A stretch of 64,000 bases of DNA. It comes from Magallana gigas (taxonomy: Eukaryota). The stretch spans positions 8,990,001-9,054,000 of the forward strand of contig NC_088858.1 in NCBI RefSeq assembly GCF_963853765.1, read 5' to 3'. The notes below the pieces were generated by a model that worked only from the letters and a program-made list of their open reading frames with translations, was not told the DNA's origin and ran no database searches. The translations under genes were made by a program, and so were the position numbers. Positions 52,613 through 58,600 of the stretch are shown here, in pieces (position 1 is the stretch's first letter; each line of letters starts with the position of its first letter).

Positions 52613-55600
52613 CTATTTCCTCCATTTCTGTAAAAAAAAAAATACAAATTGACTATTTTCCAAGTTTCTCTTTCAAGTATTTTATCTTTTAATACATATT
52701 CATGTATATCAAATAAAAGTATTTTATCTTATAATACATACATATGTGTACCTAATATAAATCACATACAAGTATTTTATCTTATTTATAGATACATGTT
52801 TATGTAGTATAAATCGAATACAAACACTCTGTATACTACACAATCACCGATAAGCCAGCATATTGTGTTGGGCACTTTAACCCATAGTGCCAATCATAGA
52901 AGACAACATACATTGATTAAGGGAACACTTGGGTCACACTGGGTATAACAAGAGGCCCATGGGCCACATCATTCACCTGAACAACAAAATCAAATTGACA
53001 AAGTGTCTGAATAGCTTCACTATTTATCAAATGCAATACAAAAACCCAACTTCCCTGCAATAATAGCACTTTTCTGACCCATGGGGGTTCTGTATTATTC
53101 AAATTTGTACATTCTTACCTATCTTTTGCATCAACTTATTTATTTGTAGCTTATATTTTTTTCTATAAATTCCTACTTCACTACTTGTAATGTATGTATC
53201 CCCTGCCCACAAACTTGGACTCCTCTGTGATCCTCATGGATTACAGACCAATTTGATCTTGAAAAATTTTCCAACTATCTTTCATCCATGATAATTCTAC
53301 TCATGTAGGTCAGTTTTAACACTCTTTTTGATAAAGAAAAAAAATATTTTTTCTGATATTTGTAAACAAAGTGAAATTGTAACAAAATTTTGGTGGGCAC
53401 AATTCTAGGTGTTTATGTAATAAAAAAATCTACAGTACATATACATGCCTCAGTCTCAGACTCTCATGTTTTCATACCCTCATCTAAATATCACTTTTTT
53501 TCAAGACAGTGACCACCTTGTGCTGTGTAGATGTATTTAAAAGGTTTGATTAGTGCTTGCCCCTGGGCTATAGCATTTATTCTGTATCTATTGATTTGAT
53601 TAATACTTGTCTGGGCTATAGCATGTATTCTGTATCTATTGGTTTGATAAGTACTTGCCTTGGCAATAGTGTGGACAGTAACCAAATGTTCTGTATAGGT
53701 TTAACTAGTACTTGCCTTGGGCTATTGTGTGTATTTGATGTACAGGGTTTGACTAGTACTTGCCCTGGGCTATAGTGTGTATTTGATGTACAGGGTTTGA
53801 CTAGTACTTGCCCTGGGCTATAGTGTGTATTTGATGTATAGGGTTTGACTAGTACTTGCCCTGGGCTATAATGTGTATTTGATGTACAGGGTTTGACTAG
53901 TACTTGCCCTGGGCTATAGTGTGTAGGTTGACTAGTACTTGCCTGGGCTATAATGTGTATTTGATGTACAGGGTTTGACTAGTACTTGCCCCTGGGCTAT
54001 AGTGTGTATTTGATGTACAGGGTTTGGCTAGTACTTGCCCTGGGCTATAATGTGTATTTGATGTACAGGGTTTGACTAGAACTTGCCTGGGTTATAGTGT
54101 GTATTTGATGTACAGGGTTTGACTAGTACTTGCCCTGGGCTATAGTGTGTATTTGATGTACAGGGTTTGACTAGTACTTGCCCTTGGCTATAGTGTGTAT
54201 TTGATGTACAGGGTTTGACTAGTACTTGCCTGGGCTATAGTGTGTAGGTTGACTAGTACTTGCCTGGGCTATAATGTGTATTTAATGTACAGGGTTTGAC
54301 TAGTACTTGCCCTGGGCTATAGTGTGTATTTGATGTACAGGGTTTGACTAGAACTTGCCTGGGCTATAGTGTGTATTTGATGTACAGGGTTTGACTAGTA
54401 CTTGCCCTGGGCTATAGTGTGTATTTGATGTACAGGGTTTGACTAGTACTTGCCCTGGGCTATAGTGTTTATTTGATGTACAGGGTTTGACTAGTACTTG
54501 CCGGGGCTATAGTGTGTATTTGATGTACAGGGTTTGACTAGTACTTGCCTGGGCGATAGTGTGTATTTGATGTACAGGGTTTGACTAGTACTTGCCTGGG
54601 CTATAGTGTGTATTTGATGTTCAGGGTTTGACTAGTACTTGCCTGGGCTATAGTGTGTATTTGATGTACAGGGTTTGACTAGTACTTGCCCCTGGGCTAT
54701 AGTGTGTATTTGATGTACAGGGTTTGACTAGTACTTGCCTGGGCTATAGCATGTATTTGATTTTTTGGGTTTGACTAGTACTTGCCTGGGCTATAGTGTG
54801 TAGGTTGACTAGTACTTGCCTGGGCTATAGTGTGTATTTGATGTACAGGGTTTGACTAGTACTTGCCCTGTGCTATAGTGTGTATTTGATGTACAGGGTT
54901 TGACTAGTACTTGCCTGTGCTATAGTGTGTATTTGATGTACAGGGTTTGACTAGTACTTGCCTGTGCTATAATGTGTATTTGATGTACAGGGTTTGACTA
55001 GTACTTGCCTGGGCTATAGTGTATATTTGATGTACAGGGTTTGACTAGTACTTGCCTGGGCTATCGTGTGTATTTGATGTACAGGGTTTGACTAGTACTT
55101 GCCTGGGCTATAATGTGTATTTGATGTACAGGGTTTGACTAGTACTTGCCCTGGGCTATAGTGTGTACTTGATGTACAGGGTTTGACTAGTACTTGCCTG
55201 GGCTATAGTGTGTATTTGATGTACAGGGTTTGACTAGTACTTGCCTGGGCTATAGTGTGTATTTGATGTACAGGGTTTGACTAGTACTTGCCCGGGCTAT
55301 AGTGTGTATTTGATGTTCAGGGTTTGAATAGTACTTGCCCGAGCTATAGTGTGTATTTGATGGTCAGGGTTTGACTAGTACTTGCCTGGGCTATAGTGTG
55401 TAGTTTTGACTAGTACTTGCCTGGGCTATAGTGTGTATTTGATGTACAGGGTTTGACTAGTACTTGCCCGGGCTATAGTGTGTATTTGATGTTCAGGGTT
55501 TGACTAGTACTTGCCCGAGCTATAGTGTGTATTTGATGTTCAGGGTTTGACTAGTACTTGCCTGGGCTATAGTGTGTAGTTTTGACTAGTACTTGCCTGG

Positions 55601-58600
55601 GCTATAGTGTGTATTTGATGTACAGGGTTTGACTAGTACTTGCCTGTGCTATAGTGTGGAATCTCTCTACCAGCACTGGCATCATGGCCGACACGCTGCC
55701 GTCAATTACATTCTGCATGTACTGCACCGCCTCTTCATCTGTCAGGTGGAGAACAAACTTGTCCTGAACCTAGACCATCAAACATGAAAAAAAAAGTTAA
55801 GTTTATATCTATCATCTTCTAAACAATGTGTTTATATAATTTTTTTTTAATATATAAAAAAATCAATGATAAACATGTATGCACAGTTGTAATGAATCTT
55901 CCAGAAGTAATATGTAATGAATTATATTCATTTATACAAGAAGAGAGCAAAGGAAGGTTATCTACAATATGTAAATGCATGAAGTGTTCCAATCAAGTTT
56001 GTAGAGGTGTAAAACAAATAGCTTCAAAATTTAGTCATTATAACCTAAATCAATTATCAATGAGCATCGAAAATTAAATAATCACTCCACGTGAAGATAT
56101 TTTTAGCCTGAGTGCAACAAAAAATAAAATATTTATGTTAGACTTCAGATACATTTTGATGCAGGCAAACTATTCCATACAATTTTGCAAATTCTTTCAA
56201 ATTGTTATATGAAGTAGGTACTCCAATGCAGTAAATGGCTGACCTTTTTGACTGATTTATCAGGCTCTATAGCGATGTCTGGAATGTTGGCATTGACCAT
56301 TAACGTGAACAGATTTAGAATGAGGTTGGAAGACCTGAAAACCATAATCATGTTAACTTTTACATCCTCCATATATGCTTCATTTTTACCAAAAAAGGTT
56401 TATAAAATATCACACACACACACACACATGTTTAAGATTTTGTTTTTAAAAAGTACATTAATGTTATGTTGAACAAAGATAAATCAGATGTTGGAATTTG
56501 TAATATACACTTTCATGGTAATCATCAATCTTGAATAACCTTCTGATTGCAAGAAAAGCTGTGTAGCAGAGTTTCTTAAAATCATGGAAATGCTCAGAGT
56601 TTGGGCCGCCCATTCCGTCAATCATTTCTGTTGTCAGCTTCATCAGTGGGGGGAGGAGCTTGGGGTCCCGCCCAAGTATGAAGCCAAAGTCTACATGGAA
56701 TAGCTTTCCTACAAGCAGTTTTAATCATAAGTAGTTTTTCACACACACTTTTCAATACCAAATGTTTTCCTTGCAATAAACAATATGAAAATAATTTAAT
56801 GTTTATAAACACCAGTAATTACCGTAAACCAACTTTTATTCGCGTGCGAGAAATTTCTTATAGATTCGCAAGAGCCTTGTTGTCGCGAATATTTCTTGCA
56901 CTAACCAGTCCTTGGCATATGATTGTAATTACAAAACATATGTGGATAAGACTTGGTCTTAAAAATTAGCGTTGCAAACCAATCTCAGGTTAGTCGCGAA
57001 ATAAAGATGTTGCGAATAAAAATTGGTTTACAGTCCTCCTGTCATTTTGGTGACCCTGTCTTACAGTAGAAATTACTCAAAAGTTTCCTAAAATGATTTT
57101 ACAAAGGTAAATTCATATATATTTTAGTAAACTGGTATTTTTGCATACATGCTTTAAAAATATAAATATAGTTATACACATATACATGCACATTTATCTA
57201 TTTAACAGATTATTAACAGTACATAATCAGCCAAATCAAAATGATATTGATTGTAGAGTAAGAAAATAAGATATGAGTAGCTTGTTTAGTAAATGTACCT
57301 GTCTTTGTCAGCAATAAATTATCGAAATGTCGATCTCCAACACCTAGCACATATGTTATGACACAGTAGCCAGCTGAAATATGAAAATAATTGACCATAA
57401 ACCACTTGTTAATAGTTTTATCCAGTGTTTTAAATTTAGCCACTGTGTTAAATTAAACAAAAATACATATCAGTAATTTCCTACATGTAATCTTTTTTAA
57501 GAACCTGTCTCTAAAATGTGCAAACAATTTTATTTCAATAAATGACTATATACACATAGAAGTCAGAGTAATCCCCCCTACCACAGCTCTTCACAAAATT
57601 ATCCATGACTTCAGGTTGGAATCCGTATGGAGTGTTTTCACACGGGGCACAGATTTTGAAGAAGCTTTGGATGCCTGTGTGCTGATTGAGAACCTCTGCT
57701 ACTGCCACAGACTCCACAAACTGGACAAAGCCTACAGGAAAATAACCATGCAGTCTGAATCAACAGTCTCATTAAAACTTAGATCCACAATTTTTTTTTT
57801 GACATAGATAGAAAGTTGGTGAAATAATCAGCATCAGTATCTTATTCCTCCACAGAGTTAGTGTGACATAGGCAATTGATTGTTCATTTGTAAATTAGAG
57901 CTTTCAGAATGTAAATGTACTTAGTGGAAAATTCAATTCTGTAAGTGATCATTGTTGATACATATAAAAATTTGAAAGGAGGGAAATTCATTATCTATAT
58001 TATTGTCGGATATTATATCTAACCCTTAAAATGCTTTTCAACCTGTTTTAAAATCTAGCCAAACAATTCAAATAAAAAAAATGTTAATTTTTTTAAATTC
58101 AATAAGGAGGTGAAATAAATATGTTTTACTTAATTTATTTATGATTACACAGAACAGTATGAGTCAAACCTTGAACTCTCACCTACCATGCTTACAGCTG
58201 GTAGCAAGAACTTTGTAAGGAGTCAACTTTAAATCCAAATTATCTCTCATCAACAACTGCAAATTTAAAAAAACGTAATCATTCACCGGAATTCAAATGA
58301 CATTTTAAGCACTGAAAGTACCAAGTACTCTAAATTCTTTTTTACATGTACATTTAAACAGGTTTTGTAGTCTTACCTTATAATTTCATTACCTTCACTG
58401 TGGTTTCATTAATATTCACAGGCATCAATTTCAAATATATACAGGTGAATCTCAATAACTCGAACTTCGGGGGACCATGATTAAACTTCGAGAGATCAAG
58501 AGTTCGAGTGATCGAAAGTTAAAAAAAATCCGGAAATTTTTGTTCCGGTCATTTTGGTTGTAAAATTATAGTAGCCGGAAATTTATATTTATAACATGGA

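Follow-up and report, generated by a model that had tools for sequence, protein, structure and literature searches.

We analyzed a 64-kb window of the genome of the oyster Magallana gigas (Crassostrea gigas in what follows; C6:8990001-9054000), which carries on its minus strand the gene for Vps34 (PIK3C3), a class III phosphatidylinositol 3-kinase (PI3K), and, spanning the point where the penultimate exon of this gene meets its last intron, a 2-kb minisatellite. Genome-wide searches covered the 564-Mb, 29-contig assembly. The exons in the window match oyster Vps34 proteins over residues 142-885; these proteins were reached by aligning the window exons to protein P0041, as a phmmer search with a 56-amino-acid exon returned only representatives of ∼50% identity. 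Identity between the window and the RNA contigs for C. gigas XP_011436592.1 is 98.3-98.7%. The protein (P0161/P0198, XP_011436592.1) belongs to the class III PI3Ks by its precomputed PF00792, PF00613, and PF00454 assignments. Members of this class have C2, helical, and PI3/PI4-kinase domains and a C-terminal helix ending in (Y/K)WRK, and the C terminus here reads HTIAQKWRK. A first-pass annotation, made from the sequence alone, had stated that this helix is needed for Vps34 activity, and the literature agrees (PMC6358306). The 3′ end of the gene is built as follows, with a slash marking exon-intron boundaries here and below.

55769-55644, minus strand: penultimate coding exon of Vps34 (126 nt, 42 codons, VQDKF...VERFHTIAQ, phase 0 at both ends).

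55638-55646, minus strand: authentic 5′ splice site CAG/GCAAGT, with the GC at 55643-55642; a U2-type GC-AG donor, confirmed by RNA.

55643-52630, minus strand: last intron (3014 nt).

53549-55658, minus strand: junction-spanning minisatellite of ∼43 units, five of them 34-35 nt and the others 47-49 nt long.

55602-55604, minus strand: in-frame TAG inside the first repeat unit; the open reading frame (ORF) 55602-55727 ends there.

52630-53548, minus strand: repeat-free 3′ portion of the last intron, including a strong polypyrimidine tract and the acceptor ...ttttttttttacag.

52437-52629, minus strand: last exon, with the coding sequence (CDS) AAATGGAGGAAATAG (KWRK and stop, 52629-52615) and the 3′ untranslated region.

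52457-52452, minus strand: AATAAA, with the poly(A) site near 52436-52441.

The translation of the penultimate exon is a 100% match to residues 844-885 of the oyster Vps34 protein P0161, and its boundaries are also backed by pieces and joints of RNA contigs and by C. gigas mRNA contigs. The last exon starts at ttttttttttacag/AAATGGAGGAAATAG (52629-52615), and mRNA contigs align over 52631-52436 and finish in A-rich tails. With CAG/GCAAGT at its 5′ end and ttttacag/AAATGG at its 3′ end in the genome, and with a junction confirmed by RNA, the last intron is a U2-type GC-AG intron. The donor agrees with CAG/GTAAGT, and thus with the consensus MAG/GURAGU, at 8/9 positions, the single mismatch being at +2. 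This is in keeping with the compensation rule for GC donors (PMC3167603), which the first-pass annotation had invoked when it stated that such donors need a near-perfect match to U1. Assignment to the U12-type introns was rejected because the TATCCTT motif is absent. An alternative GT donor, CAA/GTACTA, was also rejected; it would yield ...AQAKMEEI, and the mRNA contigs contradict it.

The repeat unit of the minisatellite is 47 nt long; 15 nt are the final bases of the exon and ∼32 come from the intron. Unit 1 is made up of exon positions 55658-55644 and intron positions 55643-55612, starting within the exon at CACACTATAGCACAG. Tandem Repeats Finder returned arrays of period 47/48 that extend from 53562 or 53698 to 55658 with 85-96% matches, as well as short units of 34-35 nt and higher-order periods of 141/176 nt. 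On the minus strand we counted 44 GCAAGT cores, spaced at 47 (23×), 48 (12×), 49 (2×), and 34-35 (5×) nt, so that the ∼43-copy repeat of junction-derived units described at first pass was recovered. The exact 9-mer CAGGCAAGT is present at 23 of the 44 sites, namely, the authentic donor and 22 of the 43 downstream copies, which we call pseudo-sites or pseudo-donors; the earlier estimate that about half of the sites are intact was therefore accurate. In the remaining pseudo-sites, all changes fall among the exon-derived bases (an extra G, CGG, CCG, or AAG). A homogeneous core spans 53700-55658, and degenerate old units occupy 53549-53715. As had been noticed before, decay is greatest at the exon-distal end, where the units at 53715, 53658, and farther are clearly more diverged.

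A search of the 564-Mb genome with the 47-mer, allowing up to 3 mismatches, gave 35 matches, all within this array, and none with a reversed control. BLAST with 500 nt of the array likewise returned matches only within C6:9043524-9045657, which is the array itself. Since the unit is confined to this locus, the array arose from this junction and not from a dispersed satellite that landed in the intron. A dispersed satellite or a tandem repeat borne by a mobile element was rejected as a candidate on the ground that the 47-nt unit occurs at a single genomic locus only.

At least six studies have DNA runs in which words of the array were detected, with 21-26% of the sampled words present; in six RNA runs, the share was 4-19%. 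A presence of 21-26% fits arrays that differ in their internal variants; variation in length among individuals, as in a variable number of tandem repeats (VNTR), is beyond what short-read contigs can measure. The copy number of ∼43 is accordingly the number as assembled, a 2-kb array being beyond what short-read contigs can size.

The position of the in-frame TAG (55604-55602) determines what use of any other donor would mean for the protein. Because the TAG sits within the first unit, the product of every downstream donor would include it and Vps34 would be truncated, as the first-pass annotation had proposed. The reason given there, that 47 is not a multiple of 3, does not hold, as the TAG in unit 1 is met whatever the unit length. 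We note that UniRef K1PVC2 (P0204), an old C. gigas Vps34 gene model of 897 amino acids, ends at this TAG. The C terminus of that model is wrong because the GC donor was missed and the first repeat unit was read instead.

We then asked which donor is used in C. gigas transcripts. All of the inspected RNA contigs (8/8; L021-L028, from eight runs) join 55644 to 52629, with the spliced sequence ...GATTCCACACTATAGC[A/C]CAG/AAATGGAGGAAATAG. The GATTC context identifies the authentic exon, as array units have AAATA or AACTA at that place; an mRNA made with an array donor would be recognized by AAATA-CACACTATAGCCCAG joined to AAATGGAGG. The protein of the spliced contigs, P0198, is indexed in 97 blocks of the contig collection. 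JGI metagenomes gave no hits to the spliced junction, a result that carries no information on donor choice. In a further RNA contig, from run X1, the upstream exons are joined and the alignment ends exactly at 55644, with 158 further letters past this point, approximately the length expected of the last exon. The genome, the eight RNA contigs, and the X1 contig thus all uphold the noncanonical GC donor proposed at first pass. Among the members read, the C. gigas-type cluster proteins found on contigs all end in KWRK, and in none of the C. gigas RNA contigs or protein cluster members was a pseudo-donor joined to the last exon. Clearly, the first GC donor is the one used in C. gigas Vps34 mRNA. 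We also placed raw polyA reads from three runs over 55150-57500. Exon depth was 2-7×, and upstream junctions were covered by 0-8 reads. Sense reads in the array numbered ∼3 in one of the three runs (X20) versus ∼7 on the 126-nt exon, and array RNA per base was no more abundant than RNA of other introns.

The first-pass annotation had advised checking whether the donor is also GC in related species. We compared the same junction among relatives, with the following results.

Ostrea edulis: donor CAG/GTAAAA, last intron of 171 nt, no junction copies.

Saccostrea echinata: donor CAG/GTAAAT, last intron of 1736 nt, 36-nt unit in 35 copies, the first unit spanning the junction.

Saccostrea cucullata: donor CCCAG/GTAAAT, last intron of ∼790 nt, three irregular extra copies within 120 nt.

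Seven distant invertebrate relatives (fragment search with exon plus read-through): GT donor, read as ...AQ/V.

A Crassostrea congener with 94.5% CDS identity: GC donor, 47-nt units with a different interior (CCCTATAAACTGAATA).

GC was found in the Crassostrea congener alone; the orthologues in O. edulis, Saccostrea, and the seven fragments have GT at the same phase-0 position. The GC donor, which is common to the authentic site and all 43 copies, is on this comparison derived within Crassostrea. The S. echinata array includes 29 exact CAGGTAAAT sites, the authentic one among them; as these sites are GT and occupy the same intron, the reiterated-junction phenomenon does not depend on a donor being GC. 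A dimorphism at the exon end, GCACAG or GCCCAG, occurs in the exons and in the units of both Crassostrea and Saccostrea. In C. gigas, GCCCAG was seen in 2/8 RNA contigs, and this A/C variant therefore segregates. Such a polymorphism in the exon, mirroring the variants of the array, would fit exchange between unit 1 and the remaining units. The sharing of GC by the authentic site and all copies would be best explained by concerted evolution of an array that includes the exon-spanning unit 1. Between genera, the intron flanks have no detectable homology and the unit interiors turn over completely. The Vps34 gene tree did not resolve Ostrea, Saccostrea, and Crassostrea, and the arrays of Crassostrea and Saccostrea may have one origin or several.

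Taken together, these data suggest that the array is probably a neutral, junction-spanning intronic VNTR with silent pseudo-donors. A 47-nt segment across the boundary of the penultimate exon and last intron of oyster Vps34 would have been duplicated in tandem and expanded by slippage or unequal exchange to ∼43 copies, leaving the authentic CAG/GCAAGT followed by 43 pseudo-donors, 22 of them identical to it. The splicing machinery would pick the first, exon-attached donor, so that the ...HTIAQKWRK C terminus is made, and the pseudo-donors would be silent or nearly so. The choice might depend on exon definition of the 126-nt exon or on 5′-to-3′, first-come selection, as experiments have demonstrated for human F7 IVS7. 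The array itself would be neutral or slightly deleterious rather than a regulator, and concerted evolution that takes in the exon-spanning first unit would have put GC into the authentic site and all copies.

Several observations weigh against this interpretation. The raw-read depth on the exon is 2-7×. Use of downstream donors below ∼10-20%, particularly if the products are removed by nonsense-mediated decay (NMD), would be compatible with these reads. In the congener, 10 of ∼111 Logan RNA contigs run past the donor into the array with all upstream introns spliced. The corresponding read-through proteins P0209/P0210 (10 contigs from 10 runs) end in ...ASTSQTL at the stop, and one of the contigs, L008, continues for 203 nt past the stop; a congener RNA contig has more than four consecutive units attached to the exon. 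The canonical isoforms P0205-P0208 account for the other 101 contigs. Some congener RNA thus retains the start of the last intron, or uses a distal donor, at some level; none of these contigs demonstrates the use of a pseudo-donor, and we suspect that the assembler preferred the repeat path, repeat words being over-covered. Two further points concern neutrality. Across the 44 units, the bases on the exon side vary but GCAAGT never does, perhaps a sign of constraint. Crassostrea and Saccostrea also both have junction arrays, possibly because these have been retained over a long time, as would not be expected under neutrality.

A rival explanation is leaky splicing without adaptive value, in which a small fraction of transcripts retains the last intron or uses proximal pseudo-donors and most of the resulting mRNAs are degraded, which would make the array a mild burden and no regulator. 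We consider this unlikely. The congener read-through from 10 runs would fit, as would the few sense reads in run X20, the array words in six RNA runs, and the use of the first two pseudo-sites in the human precedents IFI6 and CBS. Short array contigs are also present in RNA run X1, where their word depth of 10-24, versus 18.4 for Vps34 mRNA, corresponds over ∼43 copies to a few percent per copy. However, ordinary pre-mRNA accounts for the read-through equally well, no contig or protein joins a pseudo-donor to the last exon, and the exact read-through product, P0204, is known from the old gene model alone, with no RNA contig behind it.

Three regulatory proposals fare worse than leakage. The arrays of Crassostrea and Saccostrea Vps34 may be old and retained instead of a recent accident, their many U1-binding pseudo-donors serving, in a copy-number-dependent manner, to regulate in cis the removal of the last intron or the dosage of Vps34, and with concerted evolution having rewritten the authentic donor of this essential gene from GT to GC; we hold this to be very improbable. 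The competition proposed at first pass is also very improbable. Here, pseudo-donors would compete with the authentic GC donor, and copy number would set how much active Vps34 is made relative to truncated or NMD-targeted forms. Such tuning could draw on the 22 pseudo-sites identical to the authentic site, on the intrinsic weakness of GC donors (PMC3167603), on the essential role of the C-terminal helix in Vps34 activity (PMC6358306), and on array sizes that differ widely among species (0, 3, 35, and 43 copies). Yet the assembled C. gigas mRNAs use the first donor only, and the identical pseudo-sites of F7 enter into competition only when their match to the consensus is perfect (PMC1557585). 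Furthermore, Vps34 is a single-copy essential kinase for which isoform evidence was not found, and Saccostrea has the same design with GT donors and a canonical annotated product. Of the two alternatives offered at first pass, then, strict selection of the first donor stands, in all contigs examined and in its match to F7, and tuning by copy number does not, no downstream junction or product having been found.

We give still less credence to a selected cis-element in which the many U1-binding sites recruit the U1 small nuclear ribonucleoprotein to the last intron, for instance, with the effect that premature cleavage and polyadenylation are held down or that processing of this intron is enhanced. 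Junction-derived arrays do occur in the same intron in two species of Crassostrea and two of Saccostrea, and the +1 to +6 core is invariant in the 44 C. gigas units. Against this, O. edulis manages without an array in an intron of 171 nt, S. cucullata has only three degenerate copies, and half of the C. gigas sites have lost the exon-side match; unit interiors turn over completely between genera, homology of the arrays is unproven, and the three genera are not resolved in the tree. Finally, inflation or creation of the 2-kb array by misassembly, which the first-pass annotation had named as a danger, can be set aside with near certainty: no run has more than 26% of the sampled array words and the copy number is that of the assembly, but array words recur in the DNA runs and in RNA contigs, the array has an ordered higher-order structure and a decay gradient, the congener RNA contig has several consecutive units attached to the exon, and the independent Saccostrea assembly shows a comparable array.

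The window holds several further features around Vps34, which we record in their own right. A second minisatellite (52001-52344; 40-42-nt unit, ∼8 copies, 77-87% matches) lies ∼100 nt past the Vps34 poly(A) site. An array of ∼30-nt units at 49352-49981 is open on both strands, with ORFs of 178 amino acids on the minus strand (RRDHPVTSK repeats) and 187 amino acids on the plus strand; these could be ORFs made by the repeat or a repetitive protein. With several arrays together, the region is rich in minisatellites. Three EF-hand, calmodulin-like ORFs on the plus strand (41655-42017, 47286-47585, and 50822-51172) form an apparent small gene cluster downstream of Vps34 and on the opposite strand to it. 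Within the gene, the intron segments 56816-56856 and 56967-57045 have an RNA read depth of 30-180× on both strands, versus 2-7× on exons, with many variant letters and hundreds of loose ends; they probably represent an abundant transcribed repeat or mobile-element fragment. In the intron upstream of the penultimate exon (55782-56255), run X20 has reads of opposite orientation at a depth of 0.5-2, possibly antisense RNA or library noise. On the 5′ side, congener contig L008 carries a complete CDC48/VCP-like CDS (847-3240, 797 amino acids, opposite strand) head-to-head with Vps34 (3257-5932). The two start codons are 16 nt apart, so that either the contig is chimeric or the divergent 5′ untranslated regions overlap. 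A Y-family polymerase (IMS) gene takes the place of the upstream neighbor of Vps34 in O. edulis and S. cucullata.

Returning to the junction array, which we read as a probably neutral VNTR, we compared it with systems already described. The oyster array has the structural features of the known junction-spanning minisatellites and, as far as the data reach, follows their first-donor rule. The closest parallel is the 37-bp VNTR of F7 IVS7, in which the first monomer reaches across the boundary of exon 7 and IVS7 and the 4-8 identical pseudo-sites are functional yet silent, the most upstream site always being chosen (Borensztajn et al. 2006, PMC1557585). Like F7, oyster Vps34 has an intronic tandem array of units in the range of 10-100 bp, a first monomer that spans the exon-intron boundary, and an authentic donor reiterated downstream as identical pseudo-donors, later ones of which would alter the reading frame if used. 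The most upstream donor is used in 8/8 contigs and the X1 contig, with a read depth of 2-7× that allows for rare pseudo-site use. The two systems differ in scale and in the donor itself: F7 has 5-9 copies of 37 bp (4 exon and 33 intron bases) with the weak GT donor UGG/gugggu, whereas the oyster has ∼43 copies of 47 bp (15 exon and 32 intron bases) with a GC donor that otherwise has the full consensus. The oyster array also lies in the last intron of an invertebrate gene, unlike that of F7, and the choice of donor was tested with 50 minigenes in F7 but is read from assembled transcripts alone in the oyster.

In copy number, the nearest human cases are intron 2 of IFI6 (6-16), with 25 pseudo-sites of which the first two are used, and intron 13 of CBS, with 15-20 repeats and two pseudo-sites in use (PMC1557585). 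Isoforms of this kind, which would truncate the C terminus, were not seen for oyster Vps34. LMNB2 (10-15 copies of 100 bp) and PDGF intron 4 (16-18 copies of 81 bp) are junction minisatellites in which the authentic first donor alone is used (PMC1557585), as in the oyster, but their units are longer, their copies fewer, and their donors GT. The oyster donor resembles those of other U2-type GC-AG introns in that the remaining donor positions all follow the consensus and so compensate for the GC (PMC3167603); it differs from them in being reiterated 44 times and apparently fixed along with the repeat units. Satellite DNA-like repeats carried by Helentrons in C. gigas (PMC7492417) also form short tandem arrays in oyster euchromatin, but mobile elements carry those families at many dispersed loci, whereas the Vps34 unit occurs at one locus and derives from its own exon-intron junction. 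The parallel GT array in the sister genus Saccostrea further sets the oyster case apart. Nothing unusual is indicated for the biology of Vps34 itself. Rather, C. gigas with 22 identical pseudo-donors, Saccostrea with 29 exact GT copies (the authentic one included), and a third genus with no repeat form a comparative series in which to test how splicing settles on the first 5′ splice site among many equivalent ones. The array also suggests that repeat homogenization may bring a T-to-C change into a donor that an essential gene uses. The oyster array is thus a more extreme natural test case of splice-site choice than the classical human ones.

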